A program made the translations under genes and the position numbers. Source: Zygnema circumcarinatum SAG 698-1b (taxonomy: Eukaryota; Plantae; Zygnematophyceae). Taken from it: a DNA stretch of 64,000 nucleotides. The notes below the pieces were generated by a model. That model did no database searches. It was not told the origin of the DNA and saw nothing but the letters and a program-made list of their open reading frames with translations. Position 1 is the stretch's first letter, and the number at the start of each line of letters is the position of its first letter. The stretch is taken from positions 2,914,001 through 2,978,000 of the forward strand of contig CM074808.1 in assembly GCA_037447605.1 (NCBI GenBank), read 5' to 3'. Positions 30,133 through 42,256 of this stretch are shown piece after piece.

Positions 30133-32578
30133 TCACGAGAAAGCAACGTGCAGCCGATAGGCATTATAAGCAAGCTGCTCCGCCTGCCATCGATCCCTGT
30201 CTTGCCGCCACAGTTCCAAATACGGCTGCAACACCATACGAAGGGGTAGTAGCCAAACATGAGGAACATAGATTACAAAAAGCACAACAACTAAGAAGAA
30301 AGCTTGAACAGTACGAAAATAATTCATAGTGCATCTGCAATTGCATTAAGTGGATATGCATGTAGGTGAATGAGTGTGCCTACATCTTTATTTTAAACAA
30401 ACTCTAATGGAAGAATAGTACCCTCGTGCCAAAAACAGCAACTAGCAAGGACAAAGGAACGAACTACCTATCAATCAGCATTCACAAAGAATAGACATGG
30501 CATGTTGTACATATGCGGAGGGGTTGGAAAGGGCAAGGGAAGACTGACAATAATGACATTTATCTGTCTCCATTCGTTAGCAGAAAAATGTTTTAATGTT
30601 GTAGCTATCATTTCCTTGACTACCATGGCAGCTGATGGCTAATCCTCACACATTCTTTCCCATGCAGTTGCTCACCTCTTTCTCCTCCTTGCTTAACCTT
30701 CCCCATCGTTCTCCAATCATCCTGCTGATGTCAGATTCCGGCAAATCTGGACGTTGTGCCTTCAATAAGGCCCGCCATTCACTGTAGTAAAAGTTGAAAG
30801 AAGTCCGCTTTGGTTTCGGAGGAAACGCAGCGAGAGTCGTTGGAGGCACCTGCAAGGCTCCCGTTTGCTTGCCTCCAATAAGATCATTGAACGAAGTAAA
30901 ATGCGGTAGGGCCATAAAGAAGAAGTATTAAACACAAAAAATTGACCAGAATTAAGATGGGAAGGAAAAGATCCTGAACAGGCGCTATTCCTCAGCTTCC
31001 TTGCACGGCCAAGCTATTATAAAGTTGTGGTTATTTTTCTGAAGAAAGGAATGTTTATGAATTCAGAGGAAAGTGGAGAGAGGGATGCAAATCATGACAA
31101 GACAAAAAATAAAGAACGGAGGAAGTACAGAAAATAGAGAATAAGACCTCGTCTGCCTGAAAAATTGGTATACATTTGACTATGCCATTTTCCGATAACA
31201 TATAAACCTTCAAGAGAAAGTATGAACGGCATCAATAATGGGATTCTAGTATTTGCACTGTATCAAAACCCAATAACAACATTGGAGTGAATGAAGGGAA
31301 AGACGTGAAGAGAGAGAACAGCAAAAGGAAAACCAAACGGTTCAGAAGTCAGACATTTAGCTGATCTTGAACAAAGCAGATGATGCAAAACCATGTATTC
31401 TTTGACAATGTACATGGCCATGAGATTAATGCGCTCTTGTTTAGCTCAGAGTTTACGTTCCTCTTGCACACAAGTATTAGTTAGGGGTCAATTGCGACGA
31501 ATTCTAGCATCTTAACAGCTCAGCTGCATACAAATATGAACCTCGAAGTTCACTACCATACCCTCAAAGCCAATGCAAAAACCACAAAGCTGGAACCACG
31601 GGAGTGCAGCAGAATTCTCACAGATCTTTCGCCACCTCCCATGGGCGGAAAATGGTCCATATGTTGAAAAGATTCTTCCTCGACATCATCGTATTCATCA
31701 GATATATCCTCATCCTCGTCACTAGCAAAGCTCCCCTCTTCTTCGCCCCCTCCAATAACATCCCGCCCTTCATCCTCTTCACCTCCTCCATGCAAACCAT
31801 TTCCGTCTTGAACAAAATTTCCACCCTCTGCAACACTAGCCACAGATGATCCGTGCACGAACCTCGGCTGCTTTTGCTCACTCTGCATATAATTCCAGCC
31901 ACTTTGGGCCTCATCCTTTAACATTCTAATGGCCCTTGCACCTTGAACTCCAGTCTCAGGTGCATGGTACAAAATGCCAGAAAGCTGCTCGGACCCGACG
32001 GTAATTGTCACAAAGTAGCCATGGCTGAATTTGGAATGGATCACTCCCCTAACTGTATGCCCGATCCACTCCTCCGGGGCAATATCTCCGAATCCATCAT
32101 GCACATCATCTACCTGCTCCTTCAGGAGTGCAGATAAACTCTCCCTTACTGACCTGCAAGAACCTGCACCATGGCTGGCTGTCGTGGAAGCTCTCTTCCT
32201 CCGATGAACTGCTGCTCCAGCTTCTCCCAGCCTTGGCCTGGGCGGACCAGGTCTAGCAGAGACAACATTGGCGCCATGGACTCTCCTTAAATGCTTTCTT
32301 ACAACTTTGCCACCTCCAAGAAGAAGCTTCTTGCAGAGAGGGCACGTTTGTGGCTGACCCCCTTTCGGCACGACAATGGCTGAATCCGGCTGGTCCTCGG
32401 AGTCACCATGGCCCGAGCTCTGCAGCACGGAGTCATGCAGAGACTCCATCCTGCCCGAGGGCATCTGATCATCGCTTGGCCAGGCCTCAGGGATGTCCAT
32501 GAGCTCCTCCTGCTGCTCGTTCCCGTCATCCACATCCGCCATAGCCTTGCCGTCATCCATGGCGAGATAGCGATTCAT
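30133..32578 (-). CDS. C2H2-like zinc finger + HMG-box protein related to the ARID-HMG family but lacking ARID
   Basis: Exons 32578-31622, 30849-30676 and 30225-30133. Contains CPLCKKLLLGGGKVVRKHLRRVH, the ARID-HMG linker motif GHTVRGVIHSKFSHGYFVTITVGSEQLSGILYH and an HMG box PKPKRTSFNFYYSEW...IGERWGRLSKEEKE|PYLELWRQDRDRW. Confidence 0.8.
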
Positions 32579-34605
32579 CTGAATGCGGAACAGAGCACAA
32601 CAATAGGACTTCTGCGCGCCCTCATCCAAGACTTCAACTCCGCCCTCTCCGTCTCCCTTACAGTCTCCCCCTCTCCACACAAATCAGAAAGTGCAGCCCT
32701 TCCTTCTCCTTTGGGGCCATACTCGAGCATTTTCCAATGGAAACGTGCCACGTCAGCAATAGTTCCACGTGGAATTTCTCCATTGGATTATTAACCACGT
32801 AAGCAATGTCGTACGGTACCCACCCTAGTGACTGTACCAGGTACTTCGCCGCCCCCATTCCATTCCATGCTCACAGCTCACCTTTTTATAAGTTACTGCT
32901 GGCAAACGGTGACAGGAAACCTTAGAAGCGCAGTTGAGCGTTAAAGAGAACGGAACGGCGCGGCGGGGCGCATTCCGTGAATCCGTCCCAGAATTGAGCT
33001 GCGAGCGCAGCTGCTTTCCCGCCCTCCCCCCTGCAAGGAAACCAGTACGGTAGAGTAGCCGGAGGAAACTTGCAGGGGCTGGTTATACATTTTTGTTTTG
33101 GAAGATAAAGGGAAGGAAAGGATAGGAAAGGAAAGGAAAGGAAAGGAAGAAGGAAGGGAAGGGAAAGGAAGCATTGTTTTTAGCTTTTTTGTAACTTCCA
33201 GCTCCAAGCTTTTCCCTTTTGTGCTTAGGTCCTTTGCGAACAGTTCGTGGTTCCGCATGATGATTTTGTCCATGTACATGTGATGGCACCGCCATCGTGA
33301 GATCAATGCAACATCACCCTTTCTTTTTAGCTCGTTAAGGGAGTTTTTGCATGAAATTTACTTTCCTTTCGTTTGGGTATTCTTCGCATTGGCGCGCTTC
33401 TGCCCACCTGCTGCACATGGTGCTGCAGGGAAGGCGATTGGCGAGAGGGGGAGGGAGCTGAGGAGGAGTCGGTACAAGTCTCCAGCAAGCCTTTTAGATA
33501 AGGTATGGCGAATACGGTGACGCCGACGAATTTAAAGTTTGAATGACTTGGAATTGTGAGTTACTGTAGGTGCTGACTTATTTTTTCTTCTGCCAGTTAG
33601 ACATGATTTTTTTTTTTATATCGAGGCTGATTTCCTTATGCTCCTGCAAATACATGTGCGTTCCCTTAGGGTTGTGTTCCTGTCGCCCCTTAGCTCGGTC
33701 GAGCTTCGAGTGCTTGCCAATTTGAGCCTGCATGACTTGGTCTTGCCTTTCTATACGCTGCTTTTTTTGCTTCACTGATACTTCCGTGTGTGCGTGAACA
33801 TGGAGAGAGAGGACTCATAGAGGGTTGACGCGCATATGGTTCGTCTACTTTGGCTGCATGTATAACAGACTGCAAAGTCTTCAAGATATTGCCCTTACAT
33901 TTCTTGTCTTTGAAACGCCTTCCTCTTTTGCGTTCTTTTCCTCGCGAATGTAAAAGCAGTTATATGGCCGCCATGCCTCTTTAGTGTTTTGCCTTCCCTT
34001 CCCTCACTTAGTTTGTTGTGGCTCGCATGAAAAAGAGTTAACATTTCGTACCTTCACCATTGTTCATGCAGGCTTAAAGCCATGAACAAGCTAATCAGAA
34101 ACGTCTCATTTTGGCGTGCCAATTTCTGTGCATTTGGTCCTGTTTTTCTTGAGATTGAAAAGGCTCTTATCGATTTTTATTATTTCAATTGTCCTCGACC
34201 CTTTTAAATTTCTATGCCCCATTCTCGCAGTCGATATACGATCGATCGCGCGTCATTTCCAAGAAAGATGGGAAGCCCTCACTTAGGAGGGCTTGACCTT
34301 TTGAAAAAAGTGAGAAGTGAAAGTTGTCGGATGATTGTTCGAGGAATCTGCCCGCGGTTAACTTGTTTCCTGAATTGTTCAAATGATCCAGTTATTAAGC
34401 GAATTTCTTGTAAATGCGTTTTGCATGGTACAGTGGTGGTCAACACATAAGGACTGTCCGGGACGGAATGAATGAGAGAAAAATCTGTGTTTCTATGACT
34501 GTTTCATAAGCCTGACAAGTTCTTTATGATAGCGTAATCATTGTTGGATGACATATTTTGTTTTGGGTGGTTTTGGGACTAAAAGGTTTTGACAGAGGCT
34601 GGATT

Positions 34606-35186
34606 ATGGCTACAGAACGGTTTTGTCGAATAAAGCCCAGTTCAAACTCTTCTCTTGCACTTTCTGTGCATAATGTTCTTGGAGTCAGTCTCCAACAAAG
34701 CTCCGATACAAATCTACATCAAATATGGCGCTGCGAAGAGTTGGGTGGTGGAACACAGGGCTTTGTCCTTGTACACCAAGCTACGAGCAGGGCCTTAAGT
34801 TGGAAACAAGCAGGGCATAAGGTCAGTCGTCAAGTCCTCTTTTGCTTCGTTTCCCGTTATGCTTTGTCTGTCAGTGATTCATTTCGTATTCCTTCAGGCG
34901 TACAATAACATACAATTCGCAGTTTAAGCATGACATTCACTGCTTTGGGAAGGAAGGGCTCTTCTTGCAGGTCCGCCTTGATCCCTATCTTCCAAAAGCA
35001 CCAACTCCGCAACAAGTTTGGGTCATGACCAATTTGGCAGATTCGCCAAACAGCGCCAAGAAAATAACCCCATTTCAGGATAGTTCAGTTTGTCTGGATA
35101 TGAAAACGGGTTCAATAGCCGGTTCAGAAATTTTTACGGCATCATGGAGAGGGTCACCAAACCAGCAATGGGTGACAGTTGATTTG
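34606..35186 (+). CDS. EUL/ricin-B (beta-trefoil) lectin domain in two 216-nt exons; a separate small gene or the N-terminus of the downstream ARID-HMG gene
   Basis: Exons 34606-34821 and 34971-35186 give MATERFCRIKPSSNSSLALSV...DTNLHQIW...GFVLVHQATSRALSWKQAGHK|VRLDPY...QQVW...VCLDMKTG...WRGSPNQQW, with QxW-type repeats and EUL-like spacing. Confidence 0.7.
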
Positions 35187-35324
35187 GTACGTTTGTGTAC
35201 TCTGTTTCAGAAGAAGAGCATAGGAAGCTGATGTGAGTCGACTACAGTATGGCAATTGGTATTGTTTTTTAAACGCTTGACTGTGAATTTGCAGTTATAG
35301 GATTCCTTGCCAACCCCATCGTCG

Positions 35325-38279
35325 ATGGACTCACCACCACAAAAGTTGCACGCATCCAAAATTGTGGTCAAAGTGAACTGAAGGACTGGACTTTCTTCTG
35401 ATCTTTAACCAGTAAATTTGTTATATTTTTTGGAGTTCCTTGTGCGCAGCCGGAAGGCTCTTTGTACCCTCTTCCCTTGGCCAGCCATGCAGAGGTGGCT
35501 AATGATCAACACCTCTTTCTTACGACACTTTCACATCTTCATTCTTACCTTGGCAATACTCTGAAGTAAGCTTGTGATCCACTCTTCTGTAAAAAAAAAG
35601 GCAGATCGCATTGATTTTGTTTTTCCGTCTACGCATCTTTTGTCTCTTCCTTCCTCCAGCAATGAACACGCTGTTTGTTTTGGGAGCTGTTTTCCTGTTT
35701 ATGGCCACGTGGGACTTCTGCTACTCTGATTAACGGCCGCGGTCCATAGCTTTGTTTCTATGCTCATTTTTGTTCTCGTGGATGCAGGATTCCTTTGATG
35801 GGGGGGAAAGAGCTAGACTTGCACTTACTGTACAGGGAAGTGACAAGGAGAGGAGGGTTGGCACAAGTAAGTTTCACTCCTACCCCTCATCAAACATCTC
35901 CACGTAATGCATTTGTTTTCCTTCACTCGCGTCGAAACAGGTCTATCAGCTTCCATTGATGCATTGTGTGCTTGTGTGGGTGAGCTGAAATGATGTCCAC
36001 TCTGTAAGTTTCTCCTTTGGGGGGGTGTGCAAAGGACACTTATATATGTGTGGGATTGAACGCGCAGGTGACGTTACGCAAAAGGTGGAAGGATGTGGCG
36101 AAAACTTTTCGACTGCCTCCGACAATTACAAGCGCATCTTTTGTTATGCGGAAATACTATACAGGCCTTCTGCACCACTACGAGCAGCTTTACTTTTTTG
36201 GCGCGCGTGGCCCTCTTGTTCCTCCATTGTGTAAGCATCTGCGAGCTAACTTGTCCTTCTTCGGTTTCTCAGGAAGGTTGTAAAATTTGTCTGCATTTGC
36301 AGAGATGACGTAGGCAGTGTCGAATGTGTTTATTAGGTGTCGGATAGCCTGCCTTATAAATTATGAAAGAGCATGGTACGACTTGTATTCACTTTTTTAT
36401 TCAAAAACTTGGCCTTCTTTATACTATTGCTTTAATTAGCTGGATTTTAAGAGAGAGACTGTAGGCAGACTATAAGGGTAGTTTCGTGTGTACTTTTTCA
36501 TTTTTCCAATAAATGCGTTCGGTGATCTTGTTTGGTGATACTAGTGGTTTGTGTGGCCTCTTAAACTGTCATCTGCCGCTGACCAGTCAATTATATTTGG
36601 GTTTTGAGTATTGATATTACGACTTTCTATCCCCTTCCCTCACTTCTTTATCCGCCCCCTATTTTGCTCTTATTCCAGCAATGCTCCCCACGTCTTTTCC
36701 CAAAGAGCCGAGAATTGCCCGCATTCAGCCTGAGCTTTATGGCATCGACATTCAGCTCACAACAGATTTGGCTCCTCGAAAGGCCGGGAAACGGAAAAGG
36801 TCAACTGAGGAGGCCGGTGGTGCAGGTCATTACCTGCACATTCTTTGTTTAACTAGTGTTCTATTTCCTTTCTTCTCTCTCTTATCTCCTCGTCTCCCGT
36901 TCTCTGCATCTGGTTATTTACTGGGAAGCTTGGTTACAGCTGTTGGACAGCTCTGAACTTCAGTATGCATCTGTTGATTGTCCTGTGAATGGTTGTGGTG
37001 TATGGGAGAAGGAAAACCGCTTTAAGACCTTTTCTGACACCATTGGTTGATTTTTTTGCCAGCTCCTGAAGATCCCCAAGAAATGCTCGGCCACACGGTG
37101 ACTGGGGTTATACATGCGAAGTTTGAACTAGGGTATTTTGTGACTGTTCAAGTAGGAAATGAGACTTTAAGGGGTATTCTCTACCATCCTCCAAAGGGGG
37201 CTAGTCCTCATCCCCATTCCATTTTGGAACCGAAAGCAATTGCGGAGTTTTTGAAACAACGGAAAGATTCAGGTTTACCTTTAGGAACAATACCAGAGTA
37301 TCCGAGTAGCATAACGGGAGACCGATCGGCCTTTGACCTTTTTTATAGCGAATGGCATGATAGACTGAAGGAGATGAACCCAGATGCCACAGATGAGGAG
37401 TGTGCACTTTGGCTGGCAGAGCAATGGAGGAGTTTACCAGCGGAAAACAAGAAGGTGAGTAGTTTGTGCGTAGGAGCTGTCTCTCTTTTCACTGTCGAAG
37501 CAGAGGGGGGTCTGGCAAAGGCATTTGGAAGGCAGGGCAGCTACACATAGATTTGAAGAATTTCAGCTACACAGCCCACATTGTTGCCCTTCCCTTGTTT
37601 TGAGCATAGTATACAAAAAAGTGCATGGATGCACCTTGCGATTTGAAGACCCTTAAACTTACGTGTTGCCGCTGTCCTGTTTGGATGATAGAGGTATAGA
37701 GCCTGCATATCCTTCGCACTTCCTTTTTTCAAGAACCCGTTAACGATTGATGCGCTTATGGTGTGACATTTGCAGACTTACGAAGATGTTGCAGATGCTG
37801 AGAAGGCACGACTGGGCAGAGAAGCTATAGAGACTGCTCAGGAAGAAGTCGCACATAGTGGTGCTGCCATGGTGGGGGATGATAGGAGCGAAGGAGAGGG
37901 AGAGGGAGAGCTTCAAACGGGAGTCGGACAGCCGGAATCGCAATTGAGGGCAAGGATTGAAGAGCACATGACAGAACCCAGATCACATTTGGAGGCAAGA
38001 TTCAGAATCCAATTTCCTTGAAAGGGTCTGTATGAGGTGGGAAGTAGAGCAGGAGGTTTTCTTATTGTCTTTCTGGAGCAGCGTATACCGCTAGAGCAGT
38101 ACTTTTTCTTGGTCAGAGTTCATTATCCTCTTACAAATTTTCCCCTGTGTATGCTTTGTTGTTTGCAGCCTGAAGTTGTCCATTCTCCAGAGGCCAAAGA
38201 GGCAGATTTAGATGATGCGAAGGTGGCTTTGGAAGAGGATACTGCCCTGATGGAGAACCGGGGCTTCAGTCTCTTCTAA
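35325..38279 (+). CDS. ARID + HMG-box protein (HMGB9/10/11/15-like family)
   Basis: Exons 35301(or 35325)-35372, 35450-35565, 35788-35866, 36068-36230, 36679-36825, 37063-37454, 37776-37994 and 38169-38279. ARID: YPLPLASHAEV...LGNTLK|IPLMGGKELDLHLLYREVTRRGG...WKDVAKTFRLPPTITSASFVMRKYYTGLLHHYEQLYFF. Also the GVIHAKF motif and an HMG box. Confidence 0.9.
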
Positions 38280-39149
38280 AGGCTCTCCTGCTATGATGGC
38301 GTACAGCACTATGTTTTGCCTCCTGAATGCGAAACAGCTTCCACGCGGAGGGCGCTCAAGAAATAGTCGTTTGGTTTTGCTGTGTACATTGATGTTCACC
38401 TTCCATCTTCTTTAATGTGCTTTGGGAGTTTGAAGAGCTTAACTGACAACGGCTACTACTTTCTGTACGGGCAATCAATCTCTTCTTGTAAGCCTCTTGG
38501 ATTTCTCCATCAGTAGAAGGCTCTCCTCCCTGTCTCAGTGACGGCTCGATTGACCCCCCGGGTTGTTGCTGCTGCTAACTAATATCTCGAATAAGTAAAT
38601 AGTACTATCGCAATAAGGTGTAAAGCTAGGACGTTACTTTGAGGGAATGAATCTTGAGTTTCTCCTTTCCAGTTGTGTAGAGACCGAGGAGGATATATAT
38701 ACATATATGTGCCCCCTCTGCGCATAGTTAGTAGGAGTAGTGAGCAGGCAGAGTGCGGGGCCTTCTTCCTTGAGAGCCTGCACTGACCGACCGACTGCTG
38801 AAGAGGCGGCTCCCCGGGGATATTGGAAAGGCCTTTCTTTTTTTACAGAGGAAGGATCCCTTTCTTGCGGCTTGGTCGTTTATCTACCCAATTAGGGTAT
38901 GGCTGGTCTCCAGTTGTTGTTGTTTTTGTTCCCAAGTTAATCTTATATGCCATGTGTGAAGGATTTTGAATTGCTTGACATGGTTCATGTGCGCATCCTG
39001 ATGACATGCATCCATGGAACAACAACGGATGGAAGGGCACGATAGGTTTGCACTTTCGCGAAGTATACAAAAAGGGGAGGACAGTTTTTGCACAGATTCT
39101 GGACCTGCACGTTTCTGAAGGCAGCGCTCGCACTTGCAAGAGCTGCTGA

Positions 39150-39613: not shown

Positions 39614-42256
39614 ATGGGGCTCCACGCGCTGGCGCCCTCTCCCGCTGCCACGTGTGCATGCTCTCTGCAGAGGTCCTCTCCAGCGCCTCCATTCTCTGCG
39701 GCATGGCCGCCATTGAGGAGAGGATGGCGGCTCATCTCTCAGCGCAGGCTGTCATGGTATCCAAGACATGGCGCGGTGCACGCCACAGCCATGCAGGACG
39801 GACATGGAGATGCGATGAACGTTCAAGGTGGTATATTTCTGCTGTCTTTTCGATCACCTTTTTGCAGTCTCTTGAATGTTTTCGTTCTGATCCCCTCATC
39901 GTTTGGAAACGTGAATTGAAGCATGTTTTGCCTCCAATCTCAAATTGGCGGCATTGTTTTAAGCTAAATCTGGTGCTTTTTCATGTCAGCAACTTGACTC
40001 GCTGGTCGTCGTAAAGCGACAGTTGCGGGGCTAGTGCAGTTAGATGTGCACAAGCTACTGTAGCCTGCTCCTGTGCTTGAAAGGGTGCTGTGTTGTGGTA
40101 GACCAGCTGTTCCACCTGACTAGCTGTCAAGTCCAGCTTGTTGCTGGAAATGATAATTCTTCCTTGTACTGCAGTAAATTCAGCACTGTAGTTCAGTCAA
40201 CTTTCACAGTAGGGTCTACAATTTGTTTTCCGGGCATGAATTAGCACTGCGTACACACTCCCTTCTCTTCAGCCAAGCACAGAGGTATACTGAATTGCAA
40301 GATTTTTAAATTCGGAGTCTCTGTGAAGAGTTGATTTTTATCCTGTAATTCAGTTTATTGACTAAAATTCAAAATTGTTCTGCAGAGCTCGCGGATGGCA
40401 GTCTCCTATTTTCATTTGGAAACGATGGTGAAGGCAAGAAGGAAATACTGGCTAGCATAGGACAAACAGGGAGCCCTCGACCCCCTCATCGGCTTCCCTC
40501 TGTGTTTCAAAAGCGCAGTCCGATTCCTAAAAGACAAGCTCAGCCAAGGCCGATTCAAAAGCATGAAGTGGGAGCTGAAGGGCCCGTTTCCATGCCTGAA
40601 GGGGCAGAGCCAGTTGTCACGCCAAACAATGCTTTGCAAGGGATGGCAAGTGTTCCAGCTCGCCCGCCTTCTAAGTTTGTGAAACATTCTCCCATACCTG
40701 CTGGAGTTCGGCGGAGCCTTCGTTCGCCCCCAATTCCGGCAAATCCTCTATCAATTTCCGAAAATACATATGGCCATTCTCTATCAATAGATGCGCCTTC
40801 CTTCACTTCCTCTGAACCAGTTGCAGCTTCCCTGACAGAGCACGCTGAAGCGTTTGATTCAGATGTTCACACCAATTCACCATTCTCTTCTCCATCATCT
40901 ACTCATGTTCACTTCTCACAGCCTCCTGAAAGAGGGTCGTCGTCGGCTGCGTCTGCTGCATTTATTTCCAGCACTCATACCCCCTCCTCTAATGGTGCAG
41001 CTTTTGTGTTACAGCCAGTCATTTCTTCCCTTCCGCAAACACCCGTTAGGATGGCTCCTTCAGCCGTTAAGCCTTCCGCTACAGTACGACCCACAACTCG
41101 ACGTCAAGCTTCTTCTTCTGAGAGTGGTTTTGCAACTTCTAATGAAGGTGGAGAAAGCTCAGAGTTCTTAGCCCCTTCAAGACCACCTTCTACATTTGTG
41201 AAACGATCACCTATTAGTAATCGCAGTCCAGTTAGGGATGCCACACCCAGGGCAGGTGGCAGCAGTTCGGGCTCTCCTTCAGAGCTTGTAACTCGTGCAG
41301 TCCCAAGGTCACAACCTGCAGCAAAGAAAACCTCATCTGCAGCACCAGGGAGCAGGAGAAAGATGGCAAAGAAAGTGGAAGGTAGTCTGGTAGTGCCTAC
41401 TCCTCCCACCCGTCCGCCTTCAAAGTTCATACGGCGCTCTCCAATTTCTGGCCCCACGCCATTGAGATATCCACCTGCAGTTTCAATCACTCCTGTGGAC
41501 GATTCTGGTAGTTCTGCATCTGATGTCCAGGCCCAGGTGGTAGAGGCGAAAGAAGTGACACCCCCTGTTCCTAAGAAGAAAATGTCTGAGAAGAAAATGT
41601 CTGAGAAGGCTGGGAAGAGCAGCAGAGTGACTGCCACCAAACGACAGGCTGCAGCTGCTGTGGTTTCTCAAGAAGGTGAGGATTTTCTTGCTGGGACACC
41701 TGCAAGTGAGCAAGGCAGTGTGTTCTCGCATTCTATAGGTATTGAGGCAGACCAGGGGACAGTAGGGGCCCCGCAAAAGAAGGCTGCAAAGAAAAAGGAT
41801 CGGAAAGCGAAGATGGAGAATAATAAAGCTGCAGATGCTGGTATAGATACAGATACAGGTACAGATAAAGGGACTGACTCCTCACTTGAGTCGGCAGCTC
41901 TTGTGGGAAGATCCATCCCCGATGCGTCTGTGTATCGGAATGGAGTTGACCTTCCTTCTGTGCAAAATAATGAGGGAGGCCTTACGTTTGGTGGTAGCAA
42001 CTTCAGCGAGCTGGCAATAGGAGCAAGTATCAGTGAAATGGAGGAGACTTCTAGTAGGAGCGGAGTGTCAAGTGAAGACAACAGTGAGGATTCAGGGCTC
42101 CAAGAGGGAGCATTGCAACAGGAGGCGCAACATGGAGGAGAGGAACTTAAGTCCTTGACACTGCCAAAACTAAAGGAACTGGCCAAGGCTAAGGGCCTCA
42201 AGGGGTATTCCAAACTTAAGAAGTCCGAGCTTGTCGAGGCTTTAATAAACCCTTAG
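39614..42256 (+). CDS. RHON1: Plastid Rho termination factor N-terminal-domain protein (RHON1-like); 5' exons not fully resolved
   Basis: Transit-peptide-like first exon from ATG 39614; large exon 40386-42256 ending ELKSLTLPKLKELAKAKGLKGYSKLKKSELVEAL (Rho_N); four RPPSxFxxRSP-type motifs. Confidence 0.8.

Follow-up and report, generated by a model that had tools for sequence, protein, structure and literature searches.

EUL domains have been described only from land plants and never joined to another domain (PMC6362431). Their sugar site consists of an Asp, a Trp, an Asn and a Gln in the C-terminal subdomain, as modelled on HA33 and ThreeFoil, and in rice EULS2 mutation of the matching Trp abolishes glycan binding (PMC4030858). 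Plant ARID-HMG proteins, of the Arabidopsis HMGB9/10/11/15 type, consist of an ARID, a basic linker, a beta-rich domain and an HMG box. Here we describe a gene of the zygnematophycean alga Zygnema circumcarinatum SAG 698-1b in which these two kinds of protein meet. It lies in a stretch of 64,000 nucleotides (nt) that we call the window (assembly GCA_037447605.1, contig CM074808.1, positions 2,914,001 to 2,978,000 of the forward strand), and it codes, from 34606 to 38279 on the + strand, for a ricin-B-type beta-trefoil joined in frame to an ARID-HMG protein with the same domain order as its plant counterparts.

A constitutive splice joins the trefoil to the ARID-HMG part

The RNA evidence consists of assembled contigs, not raw reads, from four public runs in two studies, out of five runs of the same alga that cover at least half of the window; the contigs skip GT..AG introns, which marks them as RNA in origin. 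Nine joints, written here as last and first exon nucleotide, are identical in all four runs: 33502>34586, 34821>34971, 35186>35450, 35565>35788, 35866>36068, 36230>36679, 36825>37063, 37454>37776 and 37994>38169, the last of which closes a GC-AG intron. In run X1, all nine are found on one contig of 2821 nt that extends from the 5' to the 3' untranslated region (UTR). The joint of special interest leads from the second lectin exon (donor after 35186) to the ARID exon at 35450; it removes a GT..AG intron, is in frame with phase 0 on both sides, and has a contig depth of 445, 264, 175 and 224 in the four runs, matching that of the flanking exons. The mature open reading frame (ORF) has 552 codons, and its splice sites are all canonical, one being GC-AG. 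Upstream, the frame is closed by a TAA at 33499-33501, so that the ATG at 34606 is its first. In the spliced mRNA, the ARID-HMG half lacks a separate start codon; the first Met in frame after 35450 falls within the ARID. We are highly confident that this is one gene of ten exons on the + strand, from about 33034 to 38973.

The same fusion is made in a second, well-diverged species. A phmmer search with lectin exon 2 (72 amino acids, aa) against 1.84 billion cluster representatives gave one strong match, P0001 (535 aa; E 2e-27, 71% identical over residues 72-143), which comes from an intron-free transcript contig of 2170 nt assembled from a different run. P0001 carries a trefoil (residues 1-143), an ARID (163-247, E 4e-19) and an HMG box (29.2 bits) in this order, with the joint ...VDL/PEGSLYP.... 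The exon borders of the window gene fall exactly on this protein: exon 1 corresponds to residues 1-71 (77% identical), exon 2 to 72-143 (71%) and exon 3, with which the ARID part starts at 144, to 144-181 (84%). The two lectin parts are 74% identical, with a nonsynonymous divergence (dN) of 0.16, a synonymous divergence (dS) of about 1.7, which is saturated, and dN/dS of at most about 0.09. Since the synonymous sites are saturated, P0001 belongs to a different species, and since dN is so low beside them, the trefoil is kept by purifying selection, which by these estimates is about as strong as on the ARID and HMG parts. Word-based searches with the lectin region of P0001 among proteins of 294-936 aa and of 79-250 aa found no further relatives, a result limited by word matching and no proof of absence.

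The initial annotation had already proposed that a lectin-type domain and an ARID-HMG protein stand in frame on one mRNA, and the spliced contigs of the four runs and the transcript of the second species bear this out. It had further placed a switch at their junction, in which a choice between two acceptors 6 nt apart, at 35294 and 35300, would toggle between a lectin-only protein and a 576-aa fusion containing a mini-exon at 35301-35372. Its reading of the letters was accurate. The ATG at 34606 and the phase 0 lectin exons up to 35186 are present, TTTGCAG-TTATAG-GATTCC occupies 35288-35306, its two AGs end at 35294 and at 35300, use of the first would add Leu and then a stop, and use of the second opens DSLPTPSSMDSPPQKLHASKIVVK in a frame that stays open to a GT at 35373; the figure of 576 aa (1731 nt) is correct for that model, and the ARID and HMG exons are as it described them. 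The sequence thus permits the switch. The transcripts, however, give 552 aa instead, and none of the joints 35186>35295, 35186>35301 and 35372>35450 occurs in the four runs, though every contig-borne joint was tallied. The mini-exon lies inside the 263-nt intron, is found on no spliced contig and is missing from the orthologous mRNA of P0001, which runs from VDL directly to PEGSLYP; its donor, GTGAAC at 35373, is weak, and an ATG, 16 open codons and a GT arise easily by chance in an intron of this size. No contig supports the isoform ending in Leu and stop. We therefore regard the toggle as very improbable: the link between lectin and ARID is an ordinary constitutive splice. The accompanying argument, that the roughly 140 bp in front of an ATG at 35325 leave little room for a promoter, falls away as well, since the whole stretch is intron and the ATG is intronic.

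That the locus holds two adjacent genes, one for a lectin and one for an ARID-HMG protein, joined by read-through or by a chimeric assembly, is extremely improbable. A contig that spans two genes does not by itself prove a single transcript, and an ATG with an open frame does precede the ARID exon in the window. Yet the link is an exon-exon splice joint and not an overlap of UTRs; it has the full depth of its flanks in two independent studies, which excludes an assembly chimera. An independent transcript of another species contains the same joint within one intact ORF, the first Met downstream of 35450 falls within the ARID once the mRNA is spliced, and the lectin part is under constraint and evolves at the rate of the rest of the protein.

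Only contigs without the splice (35200-35391, depth 18.7; 35157-35478, depth 10.9) reach the acceptors at 35294 and 35300 and the mini-exon; they amount to about 4% of the spliced depth and are the sole lectin-only form seen. In RNA that retains this intron, the frame would close 14 codons into it and yield a protein of the lectin alone; such RNA may be nothing more than pre-mRNA. We also considered the mini-exon with its ATG at 35325 as a relic of the first exon of an ancestral ARID-HMG gene, and rejected this, as it has no similarity to the N-termini of such proteins and its open frame is of a size expected by chance.

An EUL-like ricin-B trefoil

The N-terminal 144 residues are a ricin-B-type beta-trefoil. 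Scanned exon by exon, they match Pfam PF14200 (RicinB_lectin_2) at 34606-34812 (E 0.02) and in exon 2 (E 0.011), both below the gathering cut-off of 25.6 bits (16.0 and 16.8 bits for the separate exons, 19.9 on P0001). The three QxW motifs, QIW at residues 39-41 (34720-34728), QVW at 87-89 (35013-35021) and QQW at 137-139 (35163-35171), occupy columns that are at least 90% conserved in a hand-built alignment of 20 rows, 17 of them ricin-B domains. Exon 2 matched ThreeFoil, HA33 and mistletoe lectin B chains in the PDB, and exon 1 alone found only chance matches to antibodies there. With a profile of the two species, residues 7-141 align to the C-terminal trefoil of botulinum HA33 (E 1e-4). All neighbours of the domain in a protein language model belong to beta-trefoil families.

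As the initial annotation had anticipated, the N-terminal region also models as a beta-trefoil: AlphaFold, given residues 1-146 of P0001 and the 20-row alignment, predicts 12 strands with a predicted local distance difference test score (pLDDT) of 90.6, in a model that is not fully independent evidence as the alignment is composed of ricin-B domains. Foldseek matched the model to HA33 (template modelling score, TM, 0.82), to ThreeFoil (0.78) and, at about 0.8, to an earthworm R-type lectin. Its top match in the Atlas was a Streptophyta PF14200 cluster (TM 0.88) named "hydroxyproline-rich glycoprotein family", which is the database label of Arabidopsis EULS3; bacterial ricin-B models followed closely at 0.82-0.86. 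The C-terminal trefoil of HA33, ThreeFoil and earthworm EW29 have the same fold as the window domain, with TM 0.78-0.83, a root-mean-square deviation of 2.1-2.5 Å and 23-26% identity. These carbohydrate binders are extracellular or secreted and often have several active sites, whereas the window trefoil would work inside the cell, as a module of a DNA-binding protein, with one site at most. No further ricin-B-like sequence was found in the window.

This one putative site lies in the C-terminal (gamma) subdomain and is encoded by exon 2. It comprises Asp115 (35097-35099), Trp131 (35145-35147) and Asn136-Gln137 (35160-35165), and the same residues are present in P0001. Several features recall the EULs. 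ArathEULS3, EEA and PhypaEULS3 are, like the window domain, single beta-trefoils of about 145 aa with three QxW motifs, in which the Asp, Trp, Asn and Gln are kept only in the gamma site; in the EUL rows of the published alignment, judged by eye, the Asp of the alpha and beta subdomains is likewise lost. The beta-subdomain motif reads GFVLVHQAT..AL in the window and GFILINKAT..AL in the Marchantia EUL, the spacing from Trp to Asn is 5 residues in both, and the lack of a signal peptide in the window protein fits a nucleocytoplasmic protein such as an EUL. An intron stands exactly at the domain end in the window gene, much as EUL genes have one in the stop codon. The distance from Asp to Trp, in contrast, is 16 residues as against 22 in EULs, which makes the loop 6 residues shorter.

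The initial annotation had called the domain EUL/ricin-B. The second half of this name stands, together with the EUL/HA33-like gamma site, but most EUL signature residues are absent. When the published signature (QxWxxDxxxS, LxNK, H71, L81, D90, W95, D100, G102, R109, W141 and NQxW; PMC2788552) was compared by eye, S46, N62, K63, H71, D90 and G102 were lacking, D41 and R109 were conservatively replaced by E and K, and the residues kept were those common to all R-type lectins plus L60, L81 and D100. The phmmer search with exon 2 returned 21 matches at E <= 0.001; none with a source name or a domain scan was a plant EUL, and the remaining matches so characterized were bacterial or fungal ricin-B proteins, though a query of 72 aa is weak and a distant EUL kinship could escape it. 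The genes differ too, in the positions of their internal introns. EUL membership is unproven, and "EUL-like ricin-B trefoil" seems a fair label.

A bolder proposal sets the donor at the end of the lectin ORF beside the land-plant EUL intron in the stop codon, which is the corresponding place. The trefoil would then be a relative of the EULs older than land plants, captured by an ancestor of these algae onto an ARID-HMG gene through this donor, and the fusion would read a nuclear glycan mark of the O-linked N-acetylglucosamine (O-GlcNAc) type or a sugar metabolite. We consider this unlikely.

Layout of the gene, its ARID-HMG part and its neighbours

All exons lie on the + strand. The 5' non-coding exon (33034..33502), which was absent from the initial annotation, has a verified 3' end and GT donor at 33503 (AAG/GTATGG) and is spliced to 34586; its 5' end is inferred, from the 466 nt of contig that precede the joint, to lie at 33034. 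The contigs of the four runs have a loose end whose last 30 nt occur once, at 33470-33499. Exon 1 (34586..34821), with joints in all four runs, contributes 20 nt of 5'UTR, the ATG at 34606 and trefoil residues 1-72, that is the alpha subdomain and the first half of beta. Exon 2 (34971..35186) completes the trefoil with residues 73-144, both coding lectin exons (34606-34821 and 34971-35186) being in phase 0, and intron 2 (35187..35449; 263 nt, GT..AG) separates the lectin from the ARID part.

From here the exon limits again follow the joints on the RNA contigs. Exon 3 (35450..35565), in phase 0 at its 5' end, opens the ARID region with PEGSLYPLPLASHAEV..., exon 4 (35788..35866) encodes the ARID core IPLMGGKELDLHLLYREV... 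(Pfam ARID, E 4e-06) and exon 5 (36068..36230) the C-terminal half of the domain (E 7e-05). Pfam PF01388 scores 27.5 bits at 35789-35866, where the cut-off is 24.1, and 23.6 bits at 36068-36229. Exon 6 (36679..36825) is translated into a linker with a basic KAGKRKRS stretch that resembles a nuclear localisation signal. The conserved beta-rich domain in the middle of the protein, GHTVTGVIHAKFELGYFVTVQVGNETLRGILYH, is encoded by exon 7 (37063..37454), as are the first two thirds of the HMG box, which is divergent (PF00505 at 37065-37454, 25.8 bits against a cut-off of 25.4, E 1.5e-05). Exon 8 (37776..37994) carries the end of the HMG box and an acidic region, and after the GC-AG intron exon 9 (38169..38973) brings the C-terminal tail, the stop codon TAA (38277-38279) and about 700 nt of 3'UTR; the 3' contig ends lie at 38928-38973.

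The ARID-HMG part has clear relatives. Mesotaenium ME000147S01093 and the Magnolia "high mobility group B protein 9" are 59-66% identical to the window ARID exons, exon 3 is 50% identical to the N-terminus of Magnolia HMGB9, and a YP.PLA.H..V motif precedes the ARID in the window protein and in its plant relatives alike. The beta-rich middle domain aligns to relatives from Mesotaenium, Magnolia and Closterium; in P0001, a precomputed label, PF27637, stands between ARID and HMG. The relatives found differ in having short or low-complexity N-termini, with no trefoil, and the HMG box of the window protein is much more divergent than theirs.

Several observations concern the transcript itself. The last intron (37995-38168), with the donor GAG/GCAAGA and the acceptor TTGCAG, is confirmed by all four runs. 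In run X4, one contig departs at 38093, inside this intron, into more than 255 unrelated letters, and another starts at 37892 behind sequencing-adapter letters; both are probably artefacts of assembly or library. The intron between ARID and linker, 36231-36678, is covered by unspliced contigs whose depth, relative to the spliced form, is about 10-23% in all three runs from study P2 and less than 1% in run X1, these depths being rough. Retention would stop the frame after the ARID (...PLVPPLCKHLRANLSFFGFSGRL, then stop) and leave a lectin-ARID protein that lacks both the basic stretch and the HMG box. The 5'UTR measures about 490-510 nt in the window gene and in the P0001 transcript (L001 1-508), with eight upstream ATGs in each, the longest upstream ORFs having 36 codons in the window gene and 39 in its ortholog. 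A comparison of the 5'UTRs of the two species revealed no conservation of upstream ORF peptides and no DNA similarity. The 5' exon of the window gene contains an (AAGGA)n microsatellite, at about 33100-33170.

On the - strand, head to head with the fusion gene, lies a paralogue of its C-terminal half (30646-32680), separated from it by a common divergent promoter gap of about 460 bp (32572-33033). The first exon of this neighbour (ATG near 32571) encodes a C-x2-C...H-x4-H motif together with the beta-rich domain known from the fusion gene (E 4e-17, with 66% identity across 41 aa). Its HMG box, from a later exon (30646-30915), is closer to the canonical form (Pfam E 1.6e-10) and shares 51% identity with Mesotaenium; a search of 30646-32680 revealed no ARID. 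Downstream, at 40358-42256 on the + strand, an ORF of 632 aa is rich in Ser and Pro, with repeated motifs of the "PPSKFVKRSPI" type and a C-terminal Rho_N (SAP-like) motif (Pfam E 9e-09). This is probably a further gene for a nuclear protein.

Proposed role and significance

The best overall explanation of these data, and in our view a likely one, is a constitutively fused trefoil-ARID-HMG protein with a presumed glycan-linked role on chromatin. The 552 residues are predicted to run from the trefoil (1-144) through ARID, basic linker, beta-rich middle domain and divergent HMG box to an acidic tail. With no signal peptide, a KRKR stretch and two DNA-binding domains, the protein would be nuclear, and, like the ARID-HMG proteins of land plants, it would use its ARID and HMG domains to bind DNA or chromatin. 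The ligand of the single intact gamma site would be a glycan, a glycosylated nuclear protein or a small glycoside, and binding would couple the recruitment or activity of the chromatin factor to this ligand. The term "glycan-sensing chromatin factor", used in the initial annotation, may be apt for such a protein. There is a precedent in tobacco, where Nictaba is reported to enter the nucleus and to bind histones modified with O-GlcNAc, in a way that depends on the sugar (PMC4030858). It is a functional precedent only: the fold of Nictaba is unrelated to that of the window trefoil, and Nictaba is a free-standing lectin, whereas the trefoil is covalently joined to DNA-binding domains.

The main alternative is that the trefoil is no longer a lectin and that, on a chromatin factor, it now contacts proteins or nucleic acids or has an autoinhibitory role; the beta-trefoil domain of the CSL transcription factors is an example of such a non-lectin contact role. 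We find this plausible, if on balance doubtful. In the 20-row alignment two of the three subdomains, alpha and beta, are without the sugar-binding Asp; an Ala stands two places before the gamma-site Trp in both species, where many ricin-B domains have an aromatic residue; the language-model neighbours include trefoils that are not lectins, namely fascin, protease inhibitor I66 and AbfB; and the Pfam lectin scores stay under threshold. The missing Asp, the Ala and the low scores weigh against a glycan-linked chromatin factor, as do the single-sequence fold of the P0001 lectin part (pLDDT 38), the partial circularity of the alignment-based model, the weakness of the HMG box (E 1e-5, compared with 1e-17 in Mesotaenium) and the nature of assembled contigs, which cannot show transcript starts or ends and can miss rare isoforms. 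Because of the Ala near the gamma-site Trp and the loss of Asp in alpha and beta, sugar binding is not assured; we take it to be quite possible that the trefoil binds a carbohydrate, somewhat short of an even expectation. What speaks against the loss of lectin function is that all four residues of an EUL/HA33-type site are kept in two species whose synonymous sites are saturated, that the matching Trp is essential for glycan binding in rice EULS2 (PMC4030858), and that the nearest matches in sequence and fold are true sugar-binding R-type lectins.

The trefoil-ARID-HMG fusion appears to be undescribed and looks confined to a narrow algal lineage, because its relatives are without a trefoil and because survey and literature are silent on it. 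The ARID-HMG relatives that a full-length search with P0001 recovered, from Mesotaenium, Closterium, Magnolia and others, all lack a trefoil, in agreement with the view of the initial annotation that plant ARID-HMG proteins are not known to carry a lectin domain. The text and seven supplement files of a survey of lectin architectures in 38 plant genomes make no mention of ARID, HMG or DNA binding (PMC6362431), and the literature that we searched held nothing relevant on a lectin combined with ARID or HMG. The window protein, algal and fused, is in both respects unlike the EULs as described in that survey.

Plant nucleocytoplasmic lectins such as the EULs and Nictaba are thought to signal through glycosylated nuclear or cytoplasmic proteins, with targets and outputs that are poorly known. 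An expressed fusion of this kind, conserved in two diverged algae and under selection, offers a direct and testable link from carbohydrate recognition to chromatin. If the trefoil is a generic ricin-B domain, its combination with ARID and HMG is still absent from the catalogue of 38 genomes. If it is related to the EULs, no EUL-type domain would have been found before it outside Embryophyta or in combination with another domain, and the statements that the family arose in land plants and occurs with no other domain (PMC6362431) would both need to be revised.

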